Positions 1-11,170 of a stretch of 11,170 bases of DNA are shown one piece after another (position 1 is the first letter of the stretch; the number at the start of each line of letters is the position of its first letter). The notes beneath the pieces were generated by a model. It had not been told where the DNA came from and ran no database searches. It saw nothing but the letters and a program-made list of their open reading frames with translations. The position numbers were made by a program, and so were the translations under genes. The stretch spans positions 1 to 11,170 of the forward strand of contig CAXIUT010000140.1 in the NCBI GenBank assembly GCA_964035545.1, in the 5' to 3' direction. Origin of the DNA: Bugula neritina (taxonomy: Eukaryota > Animalia > Bryozoa).

Positions 1-75
1 CCCAACCCCAACCCCAACCCCAACCCCAACCCCAACCCCAACCCCAACCCCAACCCCAACCCCAACCCCAACCCC
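1..75 (+). repeat. Left telomere, (CCCCAA)n
   Basis: Uninterrupted C4A2 tandem repeat at the very start of the window. This is the Tetrahymena-type ciliate telomere repeat, in the correct C-rich 5' orientation. Confidence 0.98.
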
Positions 76-285
76 ATACAGAATGGAATAAATAAAATAT
101 TTTAACTTTTTGATGATGATAAAACAGGATCTATTAATGTAAAAAATATCAAAAGAGTAGCTAAATAACTTGGATAAACCATGAGTCCTCAATAACTATA
201 AGAAATGCTTCAAAGAGCTGCCAGTAATGGCAAATAAATCACAAAAGATGACTTCTATGAAATCATGACTAAAAAATCATTCTGA
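76..285 (+). CDS. Centrin-family EF-hand protein, C-terminal fragment only (5'-truncated by the telomere)
   Basis: With TAA=E it reads NGINKIFELFDDDKTGSINVKNIKRVAKELGETMSPQELEEMLQRAASNGKEITKDDFYEIMTKKSF-TGA(283-285). It has EF-hand loop DDDKTGSI and the centrin signature KRVAKELGE. There is no in-frame ATG before the EF-hand. Bases 76-81 may be an intron remnant rather than coding. Confidence 0.9.
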
Positions 286-385: not shown

Positions 386-797
386 TCAACCTCTTTGAGG
401 GAACAACATAACTCTAAGAGTAGATCCCATAGCTCTTGCTGGTAAGTTTTTGGCAAATCTTGCAAGAACAGCTCCATTGTTTCCGTGACTGGTAGCAATT
501 CTTCCCCAAATGGTCTATTTATCATATGATTTACTCTGAATCTGTTATCAGCTTTTCCGGAATGAGTTTTGTAGATGTATGCTACTCTTTTACCAAAGTA
601 GTAACTAGCAGCTGATCTATCATTGACTCCTTCAAGTTTCAAGATGTTTTGGTTGGTATTTTGTGCGACTTTAGATCTACTTTAAACTTGATTTACCTTC
701 TGAAGCTAAGGAATTTAGCTCTAACCCAGAGTCTGACCTGCTTTCCTCTCTTGGGTTTAGATATTTTTTTTTATTTAGAAGCTACTTTATCAGCCAT
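386..797 (-). CDS. RPL35A: 60S ribosomal protein L35a (eL33), 123 aa, 2 introns
   Basis: MADKVASK...[49 protein letters not shown]...[46 protein letters not shown]. 20-nt GT-AG introns at 677-696 and 515-534 restore the conserved frame. Confidence 0.96.
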
Positions 798-1076
798 GTG
801 GTTTTTTAATTAATGATTATTATATTTGGAAAATCAATTAATATCAACAATACCTCAATCTATCACAAACAATATTATTTTAATTCATTTGACAGAAAAT
901 AAGTTTTTTCATCTTTTCCTTATCTTAATCGAATAATTATTAATAATATCTATGAATATTCATCATTATAATTTTATTTTTATTTTTTGATCTAATTGAT
1001 CATGAATATGATAATTCATTTAAGATAATTTATTGAGTGAGAATATAAGTTGATTCTATCATAATTTGAAAGCAAT

Positions 1077-1837
1077 TCAAACAATACTTTAACTTTTAAG
1101 CATCCTTGTAATAAAAATAACTTGAAGGCAAGAAAGAAACACAATAAAAACAGATTAAAATGCTTGAAAATAAGAATACGATGTAGATTGATGAAGCACA
1201 TATTTACCTATCTGCTGATCAAGAATATGACCTGTTACTGACTAAGTAAAAGCATTCTATATCATATCAATATTACTTATAACTTGGCTAAAGCATAAAA
1301 TAATTTTTGTTCAGCTTACAACATCTAACTCTTCTTAGCTGCTGTCTTAGGAGGATTTATCTTCTGACTCACTCTCATTATTATCATCTTTTTATTGATT
1401 GCTTGATTATTGCTTTATATTTTGATTTAATAAGTTGTTTTAGCTGTTGCATTGAACTTGAATCCAGTCATCAGGTAAAATGTATCTCTAAATATGACAT
1501 TTCGTTTATTAAATGTAATAGTAACAGTGACGTCTTATTTATCTTGTACTCTGGCAAGTAAATAAACATTATTTTGCTTCCAAAATACATCGAAAGAACC
1601 ACTTATTTATTCATCGACTTCAGGTAGTAATATAAATTAAGAATGTCTATCTAGATCAAAACTATTCTGCTAGTATATAGTTTTTTATATATGACTTTCT
1701 GAACGTTTTTAATTTTATCTATTTTTAACTTATTAATAAGGATCTTCCTCCTATAGAATAGGAGTTCCATCATTGTTGTGCCCCTTAGCGCAAAGAGATA
1801 AACTAACAAAAAGACAGAAGAGAAAGATTCGAATCAT
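1077..1837 (-). CDS. p24/TMED (emp24/gp25L) family type I membrane cargo receptor-like protein, 246 aa, 1 intron
   Basis: N-terminal signal peptide MIRIFLFCLFVSLSLC, a beta-rich GOLD-like middle, a helical linker, and C-terminal TM FESVFIVFLSCLQVIFITRML with the p24-typical E and Q, ending in a short tail ...SIV-TGA. 20-nt intron at 1257-1276. Confidence 0.75.
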
Positions 1838-1890
1838 TAGTTAATAATTATTATGTGTGATAATTATTTGAAGTAAATATAATTTGAATA

Positions 1891-3335
1891 TCATTTGATT
1901 GGGTTTTTCATTTCTGACATATCGAATACTATCAAATATTTTTAATTTAAAAACACTGAAGGATATTTTCTATTTATAAGAGGAAAATAAGTTCCAAAAG
2001 TACCCTAAACGCTAGGATTGTTCAATATTGATTATATTATCATTTATGCTACTTATTTATTTTCTACTATATACTTTTTATCAATTGATTAAAATGTGAT
2101 CTTTCTTGGTTGCTTTTTGGTTGTTTGAACTAACAAGATATCTCCCTTTGATTATATCTTTGCTACTATTATTAATTAAAAATGTGCTATAAGTAATGTC
2201 TCTTGATTTGACTTTATGTGACATTTATAGGGAGTTTCTATGTATATTTAAGTTTAAGAAAATTGAAAAATATTCGTTTTTGAGATGTTTTAGATTTAAC
2301 AGTGAATATTTATTGATTAATTTGCATAAAAATTGTCAGCATAAGGAACTGCATTGCCTAGATCACCCATATATAACTGAAACTATTGAGTTTGCCATGA
2401 ATTATCAAGAGTTATATTCAAAAGTCCTCGTTTCAAGCCTTCTAAAATAGATAACTTAATAGTCTATAAAGTAAATATTTCAACAATTCCACCATACTAG
2501 CTTTATTTAAATGATGAAGGAAGTACTTAGCAATGATCTTGTTAAACTGAATCAATTCCAAAAGATAAATAAGCAACTATTCCATGATCTTTACTTATTG
2601 ATATATTATGAACTTTATTTATATATTTCAAACTAATATTTTTGTATTCTAGTGGAATAGTAGAACTATAGAAGAGTTTATCTGAGTTAATGAACTGCCT
2701 TAACTAGTTTTTGAAGTATTTATTACATTATTTATTGATATTTTATCTGATATCATCAACAGGGACTATATTATTCAACATTTGCTCAATAATTTTATGC
2801 TAATATTAAAGAATTCCATTATTCTATACCACCCACAGTGCACTAAATGTTAACTATTTATCTTACACTACATTCCACTCATAATTTTAATTCTCTTTAA
2901 CCAACATTTTATCAAAAACCAAAGGATCAAAATAAGAACTAGCATAAGCAATCCCCTCTTTAATAAACTTATTAGATTGATCAGTAACATTATACTTCAT
3001 TTAAGACCAAATTCCAATAACTCCCATTCTTACTCTAATACTTGTACTATCTAATTAGATAAAAATATACCAAGATAACTCTACTTTTGCCAATGCTTAT
3101 TATAAGTCAACTGATATTGAATATCTATCAAATGATAGATATTGTCACTATTAGGATCATGATAAGTAAGATTGTAAGAAGATAGTTTTTTCGATATATT
3201 GTGAAAAAGGTCTTCAATGTGATCTCGGTTGGCAAGAGCACCAAAAGAAAGATAAATCGCTTTTTGAGGAATCTAACAAATAGATAGGATTTTTATTGTG
3301 AAGATCGTCAGAAGAAAAATGATATGATTTATCAT
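1891..3335 (-). CDS. Secreted protein, probable BPI/LBP/CETP (TULIP) lipid-binding family, 474 aa, 1 intron
   Basis: A TGA-free 475-codon frame appears after removing the 20-nt intron at 3051-3070. It has a signal peptide (MINHIIFLLTIFTIKILSIC) and several N-x-S/T sites. Its length and the segment GLLNITLD...LYMGDLGNAVPYADNFYANESINIHC resemble the BPI C-terminal domain by eye. The gene is solid; the family call is inference. Confidence 0.6.
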
Positions 3336-3362
3336 TTAATTTAGTAATATTATAATATATAA
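3336..3362. promoter_or_regulatory. Putative ultra-short divergent promoter/5'UTR spacer (27 nt)
   Basis: Almost pure A/T spacer between the head-to-head ATGs at 3335(-) and 3363(+). Depends on both start-codon calls being right. Confidence 0.45.
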
Positions 3363-4241
3363 ATGTTATCAGATCAAAAATCATTTCTCAGTCTATAGAA
3401 ACTCTAAGAATAACTTCTCTATGAATACAATAAACTAATCAACAACTAACAAATCAAACTAATCAATAGACAAAGTATAGTATACTCATAGCTTCCTTAG
3501 TCAGTGCCATCAAAAATAAAAAAATAAAATAAAAAATGTATAATTCTCAAGAATTGTTCAGGATTCTAATTGATGACTTTTTCACTAATGTAATTTTTAT
3601 TTAGACATTGTACGAAAGATAGTAAAAGGATTTTATAAAAGATAAGATAGAATATATGTAATTAAAATTTTATGTTTGGAAGTTGGTATATTAAGGGTCT
3701 ATTGATAAACAATCTTAAAAAAATGGCATAAAATATATAATACAATCAACCTGTTATCAATATCATCAATGATGTTGATTCTTTAACTGCTTTTTCATAA
3801 TTTTGGAAAGAATTGATTGAATAATATAGCTAAAATAATTAATAAATTATATCAGAATCATTCTATATTGACTATTTCAGTGTTATTAGTAATTATTTGG
3901 AAATAGGTTTTCATTTATATTAAAAAGATAAATTATAAATAAAATAAAAAATTATAAAACCTTTCAATAATAAAACCAAAATACCTTTTATATAAATAGT
4001 TATTAATATATAATCTAACAATGTTTAAATATAAAAGAGTTAGGAAAAGATGAAATGCATAATAATCGTTGATAAACAAAACAAATAAAATATAAAACAT
4101 TAATTCAATATCTAATCAAATACTGAATTAGAAAATAATTAATATAAGAAATTAAAAGCTCAAGCCTGGTAGACAAAACAAAAAGGATGGTAACTAGTTA
4201 AGTAAATCAAATAATTTTCAAATTAAATATAAAACATATGA
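3363..4241 (+). CDS. Hypothetical protein, 292 aa, apparently intronless
   Basis: ATG at 3363 to TGA at 4239-4241 with no in-frame TGA over 293 codons in the UAR=Glu code (MLSDQKSFLSLEKLEEELLYEYNK...KLKAQAWETKQKGWELVKEIKEFSNEIENI). It fills the space between neighbours. No recognisable motif. Confidence 0.7.
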
Positions 4242-4318
4242 TTTTTATCATGTAAATATATATTTTTATGATTATTTTGAATTAATAGTTAAAGTTTTAG
4301 ATAATATTAACAAATTGA

Positions 4319-5112
4319 TCAAAAGTAGTCATCCTATTTGATTTATAAGGCTGTAATATTTTTAATCTATAATTCATAAGGATTACAACTAAATATCCTA
4401 TTTTGAATCTCAATATTCCTCTCCTTCAAAGAATCACAAATATTCTGAGTCGATACAATAGCCATATTCAACAAACCAACTTCCTTCTTATTCCTCAACT
4501 TCTTCTCTTGCTGCATCACCTCATTAGAATTAAAAACCTTCCTCAACTACTCTATCTTCAATCGAATATCTTAAGAAATATCATCTAAGACTCTATTGAT
4601 ATTTCTATCCAAAATACTCAACTCTCCTCTGAGTATACTAACTTCATATTTTTGACTTTTAAGCTCCTTAGTTGAAATATTTATCAATTTCTAAATAATA
4701 TATTTTTTACTTATATGTACCCTACAGGAGCAACCATAGTATTGAGATAACTAAAATCTGATGAATTGTTATCATAGAGATTATCAAATCGAGGTACAAG
4801 AGTAATACTTTCCATATTTTATTTATCCTATACATTTTATTTAATATAATCTCTACTCATAAAAGATGTAAATGTTTGTAAATAGCTATCTCTTTTTTTA
4901 ACATCTGTTGTCCTATTCTGTGACTGCTTTAATTTTTTAAAATGAGTCAAAGAACCCAGTCTATCTGCATTGATAATTGAACGAGTTTTTTGTTTTGATA
5001 AATCTGATCTAGCATTCTAACATGCAGATAATCCTCTAGTTTGAATAGAATATTTAACTGAACGGAAACGAGGACGAAATGAACTGATTTTCTTATCTGA
5101 ATCAAACTACAT
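4319..5112 (-). CDS. Hypothetical protein with basic Ser-rich N-terminus and C-terminal coiled coil, 257 aa, 1 intron
   Basis: MEFDSDKKISSFRPRFRS...; consensus 20-nt intron at 4691-4710; heptad-like second exon (ILRGELSILDRNINRVLDDISEDIRLKIEELRK); TGA at 4321-4319. The start codon is the best candidate and is not proven. Confidence 0.75.
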
Positions 5113-5306
5113 CTCAATAATTATACTATTATTTTTAATTTAGTATTACTCTATTATTCTATTCTTCCAAAAAGCTCATAAAAAAAGAAAGATTCTTTAT
5201 TATTTAATTACTTCATTAAATAAAATAGATTTAAAAAAGCAAGATATTTTCTTTAAATAATAAGATTTTTAATAATTATAGAGTAAAACTTTAATAAATA
5301 AATTTA

Positions 5307-6743
5307 ATGTAAATCCCGTAGCTGGTCTCAACAATCCATCTCAAAGATTCAATATCATTCACCTTAAATTCATAAGTACATCATTTCCAATCTAGTTTTT
5401 AAACCATAATTTTGAGATAGTAAAACAATGTTTACTACGTATCAAAGATCTTGAAACAACAATGGGAAAATAACAAACGAATATCAGTAAAATATAGAAT
5501 AAACTGAATGAAATCTAGAATAAAGTAGAAGACAATATCGGATAAATAAAAATCAATAGTCAAAAAGTAAAATAGTTTAGCAATAACATAGGAGATTAGT
5601 TTATGGTATTTTTTTGATTATATAGAAAAAAATGTATGGAATATAATAAAAGACAAGAAATATGTTTGATTTCAAATAAACAGTAAGAAAACTATAATAA
5701 CTAAATAAATTTGTATAAATTGATAAATTCTAATAAAAAAATAAAGAAGTCGATTAATAAATATCTAAAATATGGAAAATAAAATAATAATTCGAAAGAT
5801 ATGTTCCACACACCATCTTAAACGATTATAAAACATAAATATAAAATACTTTTGCACATAAATAATAAAAAATAAAAAATACTAACCAAGAAATCATTAT
5901 TCTTTAATAACAAATTAATAAAATTAATAATAATATCACTGGAATTGATAGTTAAATCAAATCTAATAATAATATGCTAAAATAAATTAATTTTGTATAA
6001 ATGTTGTAAAAACTAAAGAAAACTAAAGATTAAATGGATGTTAAATTATCATAATTTTCTATTAGAATTAAGAAAAAAGCAGGAGTTAATTAACTATTAA
6101 CTTTATAAAAATTAATGATTTAAAAATTAGATAACTTCCTCGCTTAAAGCTAAAAAAATAAACCATAAAAAATATAAACTAAATAAGCATTTCTCTATCT
6201 CTAAAAGAAAGTATTCAATATTTTATTTAGATTATCTAACTACAAGCATTTATTGCCTGGAAATTACCAGATTAATAAAAAGATGCTTTATTCAGTACTA
6301 AAAAATGGCAATGTGCCTCATGTACAAAAGATATCGGTAAATTCTAAGGAAAACTTGGTCAATATCGTCCATGGTCGATATTCCCATGCAAAGAACCAGA
6401 TCCAGAAAAATCAGGAGGATTTGGATACTTGAACTATATTGACAAAATGGCTTATAAGAAAGGAACTTATCTTGATGACCAAAACATGGACAGACTAAAC
6501 AAAACATACAATGATTCCAAATAAACTCCAAGAAAAGCTACAAGATAGTCAAATATATTGAGTAAATTCGGTTCAGAATAAAGAAAATCAAGTTTGAAAG
6601 ATACATACTTCCGCGATGTAATATCCTAAAGAGGATAAAGACCAACTTTAAAACAATTCAGAGTTCAAAAAAAAGAAGCAGCTAAACCTAATTAATAAGA
6701 CCTTTAATCTGATGTTAAATAAAAATCACCAGAAAACAAATGA
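5307..6743 (+). CDS. Long coiled-coil protein with C-terminal CASC motif, 458 aa, 3 introns
   Basis: The frame is open from ATG 5307 to TGA 6741-6743 after removing 20-nt introns at 5376-5395, 5606-5625 and 6211-6230. An E/K/N/I-rich coiled coil is followed by DALFSTKKWQCASCTKDIGKFEGKLGQYRPWSIFP. Confidence 0.82.
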
Positions 6744-6777
6744 TCTTTAACATATCAAATTTATATAATAATAACTC

Positions 6778-7256
6778 ATGATAAAATTGTTGATTCTTTT
6801 AGATTTAGTCCTGGCTGTTTATACAGGAACCGATAACAAAGATGATAACTAGGAGTTGGTTCGAATGAGAAGAACGTCTTGCCTTATCATAACTAGAAAT
6901 TATCTTAATTCACTTCATAGCAAAATAAAAACTATGATGGCTGATAAGAGTTAAGCTGATTAAAGGATTCATATTGCTAAATTTTATGGATATTTAGGAT
7001 AAATATGTGAAGAGAATATCAGTTAATCATAATTACAAGAAGTATTGATGAATATATTTAGTTTTATATGGAAGATAGTGATTTGCAAGTGTAAAACTTT
7101 TATTATTTATTTTCTGATGTTTCATTTGTTGAAGCTTTAAGTGATTTGACTTTTAACGATAAACAAAAATAAATACTCAAGTTCCATCAGTAGTTTGATA
7201 AAAAGAATAAAAATCAACAAAATAAATAAAAATCAAAAGATTCAGAATAATTTTGA
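6778..7256 (+). CDS. Small signal-peptide protein, tandem paralog A, 152 aa, 1 intron
   Basis: MIKLLILLDLVLAVYTGTDNKDDNEELVRMRRTSCLIITRNY...YLGEICEENISESELQE|FYMED...KDSEEF-TGA. Intron at 7042-7061. Colinear with the paralog at 7386-7873. Confidence 0.88.
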
Positions 7257-7385
7257 TCAAATTCATTAGTTTCTAAAACACTTCTATTATCTATTAACAT
7301 TTTTGTATATTTTTTAAATGAATATTTGTAATAATCGAGATCAATTCAAAAATAACATTTGATTAACATCATAAAATATAAACTA

Positions 7386-7873
7386 ATGATCAAAATATTC
7401 ATAATCTTAGCTTTGATTCTTCTTCTTCACGCAGGCACATAAAAAAAAGATGATAACTAATAACTAGTTCGAATGAAAAGAACATCTTGCCTTGTCATTA
7501 CTCGCCATTATGTCCTTTCATTCCAAAACAAATTGAAAACTCTAATCGTAGATATGCACTAAGATGACCAAATGGCACATATTTGGAAACTGTATGGGCA
7601 TCTAGGATAAATATGCTAAAATAACATCAGTTAGTCTTAAATACAAGAAGTATCTATCATTTTATTTAGTTTTACACACAAGAAAATTAATTAGTAATTG
7701 AAAACTTTTTTTACATGTTTTCTGACTTTTCATTGATTGCTACGTTAAACGATTCGACTCTTAGCGAAAAAGAAAAAGAAGTTATTTAATTTCATAAAAA
7801 TTTTGATTAAAAAAATAGTGAAGAGAAAGGGAAAGAGAAAAGTAAAGAATAAATATATTTTGAAGATTTTTGA
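7386..7873 (+). CDS. Small signal-peptide protein, tandem paralog B, 155 aa, 1 intron
   Basis: MIKIFIILALILLLHAGTEKKDDNEELVRMKRTSCLVITRHY...HLGEICENNISESEIQE|FYTQE...IYFEDF-TGA. Intron at 7650-7669, in the same position and phase as in paralog A. Confidence 0.88.
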
Positions 7874-8015
7874 TCAAATATAACATTTAATATGATAAAT
7901 ATATGAGTCATCTATAATAAGCTAAAATATTCAACATTCTTTGTATTTTACAATAGATATAAAGAATAATTAAACCAATAGAATCAACTATCATCAATAA
8001 TTTATTAAAACCATA

Positions 8016-9875
8016 TCAATTAGCTGACTTCTTACTCTATATATTACTTGCCATCTAATTCAACACTTCCTTCGTATACTCAAATCTACATACCATCAAT
8101 AATACCTCTTAATTAACTCCCGATTATCACTCTGCATTATCTCAGATAAACCATACTCATTCTTCTACTTGTACTTGTTCGTGTACAACAGCTGCTTGCT
8201 TATTGAATTTATCAACAACTCGCTCTGATCAATAAATATAACCTGAACTGATTTGTTATTCAACCTGAATATTACAGCATGCTTTGATCTGAACCATCTT
8301 CTCACATAGATCAATTTCTTTTAGTCGAAATCTCTACCTCGGTATGCTAGTTTGTTTTATCCTTCAGTTTGCAGGTATCCTTTGAAATGATTGAAAAGAC
8401 TCACCTTTTTCTTCAACTCAAAAGGATGGTCTTTAAACGGATACTTTTTGATGATATCTTCTTTATCTATCCTTTAGATATAGTAGAAAAACTATTAAGT
8501 GAAGGTAAGCATTTTAGTTGAGTCATTGAAGTATACTCCAATCATATTATTACTGAGAGCATATCCTATTCCATACTTAGAAGAATAATCTATCCATTTT
8601 TTAACTGTTATATTTGTATCATTCTAATATCCCATCTTTCTGGGTGTTTTTTCATAATTACTTTTGCAACTATCCTTTAACACTCTTTGACTTCTAGCAC
8701 GACCAATATCTTTATTTTGAGTGGTAGATCTATTGACAGAACTGGCTCTTTCAGTCGCTAAAAACTTATCCTGACTCTTCTGGCACATATCTCGACTAGT
8801 TCCCTGAATAAAATAACAAATACAAATTAATTATTGGTATATAGTTTACCATTATCGCTTCTAAATAAATATAAATGTACAACTATCGTTCATCTTTGTT
8901 GGCTGACATCGATCGCTGAGTAGTGAAAGATATCGATGGCTGTCTCACCAAATTCACTTCAGTAAAGAAATCAAAACTTTTTAGCTATCTTAGAGTAGGT
9001 CTCTTATGAGGATCTTTCTGTAAAATACTAGATACTAGATTCTTCAAACTAGTCGATGTATTCACTTGATCAGGAAACGAAAAAGAACATTATTTTATCT
9101 TTTTGTAGGTATCTTTGACCTATTTCGACTCGAATGGAGGTCTTCCATATACCAAAGTGAAGATAATAACTCCAAAACTCCAAATATCAACTTAATAACT
9201 ATGTCCTTTCGATTATAAAATTTAAGGAGCGATATAGTTAGGCGTCCCACAGATAGTTTTCTTTTTCTATCCATAAAAATCAATTTTAGTAGCCAATCCA
9301 AAATCACCCAACTTAACACACATATTATCACCTAAAAACATATTGCCCAACTTAAGATCTCGATGCACTATCTTCTGACCATGCAAATACTACAAAGCAT
9401 CCAATACCTGCAGCATGAAATACTTAGCTTCAGATTAACTAAATCGTCTCTTCCTCTTGATCATATCATTTAAAGTCTAAATAAATTATGAAATACCTTA
9501 TTAGTGCAAAGTTCAAGTACAATATAAACGTTGATGTTGTCTTAGAAATTATGTAAAAATTTAACCACGTTTTTATTATTGAGACTTTAATGAATTTTAA
9601 TCTCACTCATCAGCTAAATATTAGAAGAGATACCTTTTGTTTTGATCTTTGTTTTACTAGACTTGATTTTTGTATAATTTTAACAGCATAGATTTATTTA
9701 GTTTATTATGAAATAAGTTAATAGCATCGAGCAAATCCTCCCTTCCCCAAAAAATTACCCTTCCGGTATTTAGTAACAGTATTATTCTCGAAACAGTGAT
9801 CCTCAATCACAAATAGATTTTAATGTGCTGACTAAGATTATAAATACGATCGGGCTGAACAGCCTTGGAACTCAT
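8016..9875 (-). CDS. PLK: Polo-like serine/threonine kinase, 579 aa, 6 introns
   Basis: Kinase motifs [34 protein letters not shown](E), GHSY(E)VDIWS. Polo box 1 [29 protein letters not shown]; polo box 2 [25 protein letters not shown]. 20-nt introns at 9828-9847, 9614-9633, 9477-9496, 8861-8880, 8804-8823 and 8086-8105. Confidence 0.95.
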
Positions 9876-9936: not shown

Positions 9937-10884
9937 TCAAGAATAGATTGTATGCTTCTAGATGTTCTACTACATAGTACCATCAGAATAATATATCTGA
10001 GTATACTTCTCAGTCATCTTAGACCCCTCATCATGATACACCTTGATATTCTCCTTCTTCTCACTTATCTTCTTACCCTTGCGCTCACTCATCTGACCAG
10101 GATTCAAAACTGAACCCTTTGAAGGAATATTGCTCTATAACTCACTAAATATTCCATTATTCTTAGGCTCTCTATTATATTGATTTTTCACATTTTTTGA
10201 AATATCAGTCCTAACCATATCTTTTTCTGGTTTATAGGCACTTTTAGCCTGATTAAAACAACCAGAAGGAGAACTACTCGCCTGCGATCCCTAATTTAAA
10301 TTCGAATGAGCACCTCTGATTTGAAGTTTATTTTCTGTCAAATTAAAAACAGTGATAATTTTATCATTTTGAACTGCAGATTGACAACCTATATATCTAT
10401 ACAGAGGATTAAACAATGTTTTTCTGTGTCCCCTATCTTCCACTCCATCATCAATGATTAATCCTAGGATAGTCATTTCTGCATAGTTTCTTTTATCCAA
10501 ATAGAAATCAGCTCCAATGATTTAAGCCATGGCTCCTTGTCCTTTTTTACATACTTTCAAAATTCTATCACTAAATGAAGATTTGTCAGTGCCAATATGC
10601 CCAAAAAGATTATTCTTCGCAAGATCTGTCACATGATTTCTAGCTGAAGTATTCAATCCTTAATGCATTTAGAAAGCAGGTAATGTAGCTTGTTTTTGCA
10701 TAAAATGTTTAGCCTCTTTCCAAGCTTTAACTCCTTCATTAGTTTAGTATATCATGTCTTAATTGATAGGTATTTCTTTATCATTAACAAAGGTTTGTAG
10801 TTGTCTGTCGATAAGATTCACATAGTATGATGGAAGCTGACGTGCCAAATTGATATATTTAACCATTTAGACTTCTTCAGTCAT
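9937..10884 (-). CDS. CAP/SCP (cysteine-rich secretory protein-like) domain protein, 315 aa, intronless
   Basis: INLARQLP...TNEGVKAWKEA...GLNTSARNHVTDL...FGHIGTDKSSFSDRI...MA(E)IIG...LIIDDGVEDRGHRKTLFNPLYRYIG matches the protist/bacterial-type CAP domain. It has a low-complexity C-terminal extension and no obvious signal peptide. It ends TGA TGA TGA. Confidence 0.88.
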
Positions 10885-10972: not shown

Positions 10973-11170
10973 GGGGTTGGGGTTGGGGTTGGGGTTGGGG
11001 TTGGGGTTGGGGTTGGGGTTGGGGTTGGGGTTGGGGTTGGGGTTGGGGTTGGGTTGGGGTTGGGGTTGGGGTTGGGGTTGGGGGGGTTGGGGTTGGGGTT
11101 GGGGTTGGGGTTGGGGGTTGGGGTTGGGGTTGGGGTTGGGGTTGGGGTTGGGGTTGGGGTTGGGGTTGGG
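10973..11170 (+). repeat. Right telomere, (GGGGTT)n
   Basis: About 200 nt of G4T2 repeat running to the end of the window, with two longer G-runs (G7 near 11080, G5 near 11113). Confidence 0.98.

Follow-up and report, generated by a model that had tools for sequence, protein, structure and literature searches.

Introns of exactly 20 nt on a ciliate somatic chromosome and their counterparts in related species

The chromosome and its sixteen introns

Contig CAXIUT010000140.1 of the GenBank assembly GCA_964035545.1, filed under the bryozoan Bugula neritina, is an 11,170-nt stretch of DNA (hereafter the window) that carries nine genes with TGA as the sole stop codon. Eight of the nine contain introns of exactly 20 nt, and what holds these introns to a single length is the subject of this paper. 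The window reads (CCCCAA)n at its start and (GGGGTT)n at its end, and telomere repeats at both ends mark it as a complete, telomere-capped somatic chromosome of a ciliate. Its GC content is 20-33%. Gene models were built in Python with TGA as the only stop, because a standard-code listing of open reading frames (ORFs) is useless where TAA and TAG are sense codons; the spliced coding sequences (CDSs) are free of internal TGA, and all nine terminate in it. In alignments to the syntenic orthologs of a related species, Glu codons stand opposite 47 of the 120 TAA codons of the window, followed by TAA or TAG (19), Asp (15) and Gln (9). Glu likewise stands opposite 19 of the 43 TAG codons, Gln not being among the main partners of TAG. 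TAA also encodes the invariant Glu in the APE motif of the kinase. The window thus uses the peritrich nuclear code (NCBI table 30), in which TAA and TAG encode Glu and TGA alone is a stop. An initial annotation of this DNA had attributed it to a peritrich, and the alignment of both codons to Glu agrees with this; on its genetic code, the organism would be a peritrich. No rRNA is present in the window, which is not human DNA and carries no gene for a toxin or an effector and none of a virus. Further contigs of the same species were sought and none was found, the closest relatives differing in sequence.

The introns lie on both strands and are spread over RPL35A (2), B (1), C (1), D (1), E (3), F (1), G (1) and the polo-like kinase gene PLK (6), while gene I is intronless (Table 1). 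The recount gave the same figures as the initial annotation: all 16 are exactly 20 nt long and begin with GTA, 14 end in TAG and 2 in CAG (8804-8823 and 9828-9847), none has G at +5, and their excision restores TGA-free reading frames. Each kb of CDS thus contains about 1.7 introns on average (16 over about 9.4 kb). The same length stands out when genes are disregarded. Matches to the motif GTA(N14)YAG, exactly 20 nt long, number 21 in the window, where shuffles that preserve dinucleotides yield 6.75 +/- 2.83, and every other motif length from 14 to 39 nt has 2-11 matches. If an A at position 15 (A15) is also required, 18 matches stand against 2.43 +/- 1.55, an enrichment of about 7-fold, and none of 200 shuffles attains that number. 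At the 15-16 nt typical of heterotrichs, the spectrum of motif lengths shows no excess. Introns of other lengths were looked for as well. The ortholog alignments inspected, which cover all nine genes in the sister species and parts of PLK and E in the related locus L015, leave no frame shift of the window unaccounted for and show no GT..AG insertion of 7 codons in it, so that no missed intron of another length is seen. Little power attached to a scan that joined frames between TGA-free flanks, because TGA is rare in the AT-rich DNA of the window.

Table 1. Features of the window. Every intron listed is 20 nt long and has A at position 15. L numbers denote loci of related organisms, L001 and L009 being parts of one sister-species contig; P numbers denote RPL35A relatives. 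A slash marks a splice junction.
Feature	Position	Strand	Details	Comparison or basis
Telomere	1..76	.	(CCCCAA)n	read directly from sequence
RPL35A	386..797	-	3 exons, 123 aa	Pfam PF01247 on both exon pieces, adjoining profile stretches; homologs
RPL35A intron	515..534	-	GTAAATCATATGATAAATAG, phase 0	FR/TIWG as in intronless P0009-11, P0014-15; 20 nt at same site in L001, L007, L008
RPL35A intron	677..696	-	GTAAATCAAGTTTAAAGTAG, phase 2	FRR/SKV as in P0008 without intron; 20 nt in L001, L008
Gene B	1077..1837	-	246 aa, no named family	ortholog in L001
Gene B intron	1257..1276	-	GTAATATTGATATGATATAG, phase 0	same site in L001, 23 nt
Gene C	1891..3335	-	474 aa, no named family	ortholog in L001, 41% identical
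Gene C intron	3051..3070	-	GTATATTTTTATCTAATTAG, phase 1	absent in L001, no alignment gap; 20 nt in L015
Gene D	4319..5112	-	257 aa, no named family, start ATG 5112-5110	orthologs in L001, L015
Gene D intron	4691..4710	-	GTAAAAAATATATTATTTAG, phase 0	same site, 20 nt, in L001, L015, L019
Gene E	5307..6743	+	458 aa, no named family	orthologs in L001, L015
Gene E intron	5376..5395	+	GTACATCATTTCCAATCTAG, phase 0	same site, 21-nt GTA..TAG, in L001, L015
Gene E intron	5606..5625	+	GTATTTTTTTGATTATATAG, phase 0	same site, 20 nt, in L001, L015
Gene E intron	6211..6230	+	GTATTCAATATTTTATTTAG, phase 0	20 nt in L001, L019; appears absent in L015
Gene F	6778..7256	+	152 aa, paralog of G	one ortholog each in L001, L015
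Gene F intron	7042..7061	+	GTATTGATGAATATATTTAG, phase 0, codon 89	codon as in G; 21 nt in L001, 20 nt in L015
Gene G	7386..7873	+	155 aa, paralog of F	gene model
Gene G intron	7650..7669	+	GTATCTATCATTTTATTTAG, phase 0, codon 89	position common to F
PLK	8016..9875	-	polo-like kinase, 7 exons, 579 aa	Pfam Pkinase and two POLO_box; L001 ortholog 81% identical
PLK intron	8086..8105	-	GTATTATTGATGGTATGTAG, phase 2	gapless vs 13 PLKs; 20 nt in L001, L015, L021, L041; 21 nt in L032, L037, L042
PLK intron	8804..8823	-	GTATTTGTTATTTTATTCAG, phase 0	absent in L001, no gap; 20 nt in L015, L028, L029; 22 nt in L016
PLK intron	8861..8880	-	GTACATTTATATTTATTTAG, phase 2	absent in L001, no gap; 20 nt in L015, L026, L028; 21 nt in L016
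PLK intron	9477..9496	-	GTATTTCATAATTTATTTAG, phase 0	CTNK/TLND gapless vs 13 PLKs; 20 nt in L001, L015, L018, L021; 21 nt in L016, L019, L023
PLK intron	9614..9633	-	GTATCTCTTCTAATATTTAG, phase 0	KQK/LMSEI gapless vs 13 PLKs; 20 nt in L001, L018, L021, L023; 21 nt in L015, L016, L019, L042
PLK intron	9828..9847	-	GTATTTATAATCTTAGTCAG, phase 1	same site in L009 (20 nt, CAG), L015 (20), L018 (20), L016 (21)
Gene I	9937..10884	-	intronless, about 315 aa, no named family	intronless L009 ortholog, 55% identical
Telomere	10973..11170	.	(GGGGTT)n and a few irregular units	read directly from sequence

Junctions, rejected candidates and intron anatomy

By comparison with orthologous loci of related species or with outgroup proteins, all 16 junctions are pinned. 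The most informative relative is a sister species represented by a 33-kb stretch (L001, L009 and L013) of a 36-39 kb contig (36% GC), which is syntenic with the entire window in the order I-PLK-F/G-E-D-C-B-RPL35A. Three introns, PLK 8861-8880 and 8804-8823 and C 3051-3070, are absent from L001, and the protein alignment runs across their sites without a gap, so these junctions are fixed to the base. The remaining intron sites are occupied in the sister species by introns of diverged sequence; for example, L009 has an intron where the window has PLK 9828-9847. The initial annotation had pinned several junctions by protein conservation in RPL35A and PLK and by the shared position in the paralogs F and G. 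KQK/LMSEI, CTNK/TLND and KR/FEYTKE are gapless across the 13 full-length PLKs of a representative library, and the F and G introns both lie at codon 89 in phase 0. In the case of RPL35A, relatives lacking one or the other intron read straight across its site, FRRSKV in P0008 and FRTIWG in P0009-11 and P0014-15. They were found with the standard-code ORF spanning RPL35A intron 2 as the query; other relatives found in this way read through the intron alike, with seven residues followed by the same out-of-frame exon. Such a common read-through implies that the intron has the same site and a length of 20 nt in at least 6 lineages. The window introns can accordingly be classed, by sequence, as U2-type spliceosomal GT-AG introns, ordinary in kind.

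It is very improbable that the 20-nt segments are not spliceosomal at all and represent assembly errors, leftovers of germline eliminated sequence (IES) or programmed ribosomal frameshift sites. The idea draws on the fact that the 20-nt introns were read from DNA, and on the frequent +1 frameshifting of some ciliates (Euplotes). Against it, all 16 segments have the form GTA..A15..YAG, the same sites recur with diverged sequence in many independently assembled metagenome contigs, and presence or absence among orthologs is exact to the base. A 20-nt insertion, moreover, is no +1 or -1 frameshift site, and Paramecium-type IESs are bounded by TA, not by GT..AG.

Intron presence varies a great deal among close relatives. 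The sister species lacks two PLK introns and that of gene C, all three of which L015 has; most PLK introns are absent in L018, and the third intron of gene E appears to be absent in L015, where a single tblastn segment spans the 6211-6230 site with no frame change. This variation suggests rapid, exact loss or gain of introns. One irregular site was seen in L007, a contig taken to be Paramecium-like: over L007:380-520, the 5' part of RPL35A gives no clean exons, LWVRAKFL and GFRRSKV lying in different frames, separated by one extra base and by nothing long enough to be an intron. The break could be an assembly indel, an odd short upstream intron or a frameshift site.

Several 20-mers of the window resemble introns and were rejected. 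A GTA..TAG segment at 4367-4386 (-), on the sense strand of gene D, at first seemed to restore a frame, yet it is not an intron: the unspliced frame IFSCNPYELEIKNITALE is conserved with IFDCHPLELEIRQIIALE in L001, and the segment has T instead of A at position 15. A second, GTA..A15..TAG at 5107-5126 (-), also seemed frame-restoring and contains the start codon of gene D. In the equivalent region of L001, TGA closes the upstream reading frame; that of L015 lacks GT..AG and keeps ATG-TAG. The start ATG-TAG (Met-Glu, with a reassigned stop as codon 2) is conserved in three species in the context GATGTAG. The start regions concerned are 5107-5126 in the window, L001:3990-4010 and about 5100-5115 in L015, that of the window mimicking a complete 20-nt intron with A15. 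Three further GTA..YAG 20-mers, at 2644-2663, 3166-3185 and 9672-9691, lie opposite the strand of the overlapping gene and are chance matches.

The introns share more than their ends. Every one of the 16 window introns has A at position 15 (-6 from the 3' end), as has each of the 43 orthologous introns of 20 nt found in relatives (59/59), and window positions 11-14 and 16-18 are mostly T. This A looks like a fixed branch point. The layout is best written as GUA, 11 nt rich in U and A, A, two bases and YAG, which makes these introns sequence-defined and not set by distance alone. The proposal of the initial annotation that they are defined mainly by distance is thus not upheld, given an A15 that is as invariant as GTA and YAG and a decoy with T15 at 4367-4386 that is evidently translated. 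Of the 22 introns of 21-23 nt in relatives, 16 have this A at -6 and the others have it at -7, so that their extra bases may lie on either side of it. In a few orthologous introns the 3' end is AAG or GAG, for instance GTATTTCATCATTAATGAAG and GTATTTTTCTGCTTAACGGGAG; such ends were noted at PLK site 113 of L035 and at PLK sites of L015, L026 and the sister species, so that across the clade a pyrimidine at -3 is not a strict rule.

Some features of the neighbourhood can be added. Gene B has a hydrophobic, signal-peptide-like N-terminus, as do the tandem paralogs F and G. The sister species and L015 have a single F/G copy, which points to a recent duplication in which the 20-nt intron was copied along with the gene; by our own count, 6 of the 20 positions are now different between these two introns. 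The product of gene E looks, on our own reading, like a coiled-coil-like protein with a Cys-rich C-terminal motif. A Pfam search of tested pieces of genes C, E and I gave no match, and tRNA and Rfam scans of the window and seven related loci, small nuclear RNAs (snRNAs) included, gave none either. Between C and D lies an AT-rich stretch of about 1 kb (3336-4318, about 20% GC) with no convincing gene, and a spacer of like size is present in the sister species. Gene I probably starts at the ATG at 10884, only about 90 nt from the telomere; its longest reading frame extends to 10968. The sister syntenic block continues past both ends of the window, by 2 kb beyond gene I and by more than 20 kb beyond RPL35A. 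As this block sits inside a 36-39 kb contig and the window is a chromosome of 11.2 kb, the sites of breakage and telomere addition differ between close relatives.

Intron lengths in relatives and what may set them

Orthologous loci were collected through exact-protein look-ups (L015-L018) and through a metagenome scan with a polo-box piece, which gave 25 loci that are 65-98% identical (L019-L043). The length of each insert was determined from the span between protein anchors, the insert being identified as a GT..AG segment; meaningless automated inserts (36, 42, 45 and so on), arising from indels in the PLK linker or from more distant homologs, were excluded. The panel comprises 66 unique orthologous introns from about 20 species or strains, of which 43 are 20 nt, 16 are 21 nt, 5 are 22 nt, 1 is 23 nt and 1 is an apparent 26 nt, the last probably being 20 nt plus two codons. 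Lengths thus range from 20 to 26 nt, and none of the 82 introns (16 in the window and 66 in relatives) is shorter than 20 nt. Species differ in composition. Besides the window (16/16), L028 (4/4), L021 (3/3) and L018 (3/3) have 20-nt introns only; the sister species (nine of 20 nt, two of 21, one of 23) and L015 (nine of 20, two of 21) are mixed; and L016 (21, 21, 21, 21, 22), L035/36 (22, 22, 22) and L042/43 (21, 21) have no 20-nt intron. Motif counts over whole loci can also be compared: at 20/21/22 nt they are 5/9/6 in the 20-kb locus L043, with a peak at 21, and 37/9/2 in L031. The peak at 20 nt holds over a GC range of 26-48%, in the window, in the sister contig (31 against a background of about 6), in L008 (8 against about 1.6) and in L031 (37). 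L007, which has an intron mode of 25 nt, carries the RPL35A intron at the same site and at 20 nt.

One explanation for a fixed length starts from the genetic code. A retained 20-nt intron shifts the frame and exposes TGA, the sole stop, so that selection through nonsense-mediated decay (NMD) might fix a length that is not a multiple of three (3n). All 16 window introns do shift the frame if retained, with a first TGA 3-106 codons downstream and before the normal stop in 15 of them, and the same reasoning accounts for the scarcity of 3n introns in Paramecium (PMC11334263). The argument of the initial annotation is one already made for Paramecium. Here it is weakened, and as the cause of the length it is improbable. 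The window has no intron whose length is a multiple of three, but 16 of the 66 introns in relatives (24%) are 21 nt long, sites in the kinase domain included, and those of them that were translated have no in-frame TGA; in one species 4 of 5 PLK introns are 21 nt long. Since 21-nt, TGA-free introns are common in relatives, selection against 3n lengths is unlikely to be what fixes the length. It would disfavour 21 nt and leave the rarity of 22, 23, 25 and 26 nt and the lack of anything below 20 nt unexplained, and retention of RPL35A intron 2 gives no premature stop. The 21-nt in-frame elements of the form GTA..A..YAG were seen at about 2010-2030 (-) and 3705-3725 (-) in L001, at L015:1348-1368 and at L016:335-355, 473-493 and about 1088-1108. 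At such orthologous sites, retention of a TGA-free element would add 7 residues, in some cases inside the kinase domain.

The explanation that we favour, and hold to be rather probable, is that of a hard floor: ordinary U2-type introns of a peritrich ciliate would have shrunk to 20 nt, the least that its spliceosome is able to process. Each 20-nt intron would be wholly occupied by signals, namely the GUA 5' splice site, the 11-nt U/A-rich spacer, A15, two bases and YAG. Twenty nucleotides would then be the sum of a minimal distance from the 5' splice site to the branch A (14 nt) and from the branch A to the 3' end (5 nt). Deletion bias or selection for compactness may drive introns down to this floor, below which they could not be spliced. 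The expected outcome is a peak at 20 nt that falls off on one side only, into a thin tail of 21-23 nt, the extra bases lying on either side of the branch A. The floor is preferred because lengths extend to one side of 20 nt only, because A15 is invariant among the shortest introns and because Paramecium has the same 20-nt minimum. Of the fixed-length ruler in the initial annotation, the very tight constraint on length is retained and the fixed value is not, as relatives range over 20-23 nt with the apparent 26.

Several points weigh against a floor. Length differences among species are non-random (permutation p about 5e-5), and the 16/16 of the window is more extreme than the 65% at 20 nt of the pooled relatives would predict (P about 0.001). 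Such differences fit a set-point specific to each species, not one universal floor combined with drift. Most of the panel of relatives comes from a single gene (PLK) and from metagenome contigs. Finally, splicing, lariats and the branch point are read from DNA and comparison only, and for the 21-nt in-frame elements DNA alone cannot prove that splicing occurs.

Alternatively, a molecular ruler or caliper might measure a fixed distance, from the 5' splice site to the branch or from end to end, and reject shorter and longer introns alike. Its set-point would be 20 nt in the window species and would have shifted to 21-22 nt in some relatives. This is possible, though we consider it doubtful. It would account for the 16/16 of the window, for the significant heterogeneity among species (0/5, 0/3 and 0/2 at 20 nt in L016, L035/36 and L042, against L028, L021 and L018 with no other length), for the different locus-wide spectra of L031 and L043, and for homologous introns that are a single base apart, such as PLK intron 4 of the window, GTACATTTATATTTATTTAG, and that of L016, GTACATTTTTTATTTATTTAG. 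A caliper has also been proposed for nucleomorph introns of 18-21 bp (PMC6009652), and tight length distributions in ciliates are read in a recent preprint as the mark of a structurally constrained spliceosome. However, lengths are mixed at orthologous sites within single species (the sister species and L015), which requires a tolerance of +3 or more. Lengths extend to one side only, none being under 20 nt, as a floor predicts. Sequence signals count too, A15 being invariant and the T15 decoy unspliced, and the species with a mode of 21 are known from only 2-5 introns each, mostly from one gene. A specific form of the ruler, tentatively raised here, is that close peritrich relatives have distinct and sharp set-points (20 against 21-22 nt), the spacing from branch to 3' end being fixed and that from 5' splice site to branch shifting by 1-2 nt in concert. 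If so, the shifts would amount to a real and evolvable spliceosomal ruler, the basis of which (the geometry of U1-U2 bridging, or SF1, U2AF and SF3b) could be found by comparing 20-mode and 21-mode species.

Relation to known systems of tiny introns

Tiny, length-constrained introns are already known from heterotrichs, Paramecium and the nucleomorph of Bigelowiella natans, and narrow intron lengths have been stated for peritrichs. Our literature searches for a dedicated open-access description of peritrich introns or genomes gave none, the one paper that they yielded being that of Zhou et al. (2026), in which Campanella sinica, Epistylis hentscheli and Vorticella campanula are credited with 'similarly narrow' intron lengths (Fig. 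2g) and with low retention of ancestral introns (PMC13685798). Its text gives neither a length nor a description of the branch site nor differences between species. The question left by the initial annotation, of whether such introns had been reported for peritrichs, can therefore be answered in part, for the narrowness of the distributions in three genomes, and the text states no value. What appears to be new, as far as we found, is the exact 20-nt floor with no shorter intron, the invariant A15 (59/59) and the differences of 20, 21 and 22 nt between species. Reductions of the spliceosome, which the initial annotation had suggested looking for, are unlikely: according to the same paper, all ciliates surveyed, the three peritrichs included, have five snRNAs and a full core protein set (PMC13685798).

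These findings bear on annotation practice. RNA-seq aligners and gene predictors often have default minimum intron lengths of 20 nt or more, and that of HISAT2 is 20 according to one preprint. With such defaults, the annotation of peritrich genomes needs adjusted settings together with code table 30. More generally, introns that are tiny and nearly fixed in length can be used to probe the minimal size of a spliceosomal substrate and the pairing of splice sites across the intron.

The B. natans nucleomorph has introns of 18-21 bp, for which a 'molecular caliper' was put forward (Gilson et al. 2006, as cited in PMC6009652), an idea equivalent to the ruler of the initial annotation. The two systems are alike in a length range of about 4 nt, AU-richness, canonical GU-AG ends and high density. 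They differ in that the nucleomorph introns have no discernible branch A, whereas an A at -6 is invariant in the 20-nt introns described here and is accompanied by a U-rich tract. The setting differs as well, a reduced endosymbiont nucleus in one case and the somatic nucleus of a free-living ciliate with a full spliceosome in the other.

In heterotrichs such as Stentor and Blepharisma, introns have a fixed A near the 3' end, and with their very sharp mode (about 15-16 nt) and AT-rich GT..AG sequence they resemble those of the window. In contrast, their mode is 15 nt, a multiple of three, with a phase-0 bias and less than 0.1 intron per kb of CDS, against 20 nt (3n+2) and about 1.7 per kb here, and the lineage is distant (Postciliodesmatophora against Oligohymenophorea). 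Their spliceosome is complete despite the tiny introns (PMC13685798).

The nearest known system is Paramecium, whose tiny introns fall to more than 95% within 20-34 nt, with species means of 23-28 (PMC11334263); this range goes back to Russell et al. (1994) and Jaillon et al. (2008), as reviewed there. Shared with the window are the class Oligohymenophorea, GT..AG ends (GTA..YAG here), a 20-nt minimum, TGA as the sole stop, the reasoning on frame shift and NMD, and the position of the RPL35A FR/TIWG intron, common to L007 if that contig is Paramecium-like. Lengths in Paramecium are spread over 20-34 nt, whereas those of the window lie 16/16 at the minimum and those of its relatives reach 23 (or 26), and TAR encodes Gln there and Glu here. 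The initial annotation saw a development independent of heterotrichs, and the length mode does differ from theirs. A trait so like that of Paramecium was probably inherited and then sharpened, and would not constitute a new system. Species with 20, 21 and 22 nt, together with presence and absence at the same sites, form a comparative series in which the component responsible for the minimum could be sought. Beside the 15-16 nt of heterotrichs and the 20-34 nt of Paramecium, this locus represents a third ciliate regime, a spike at 20 nt.

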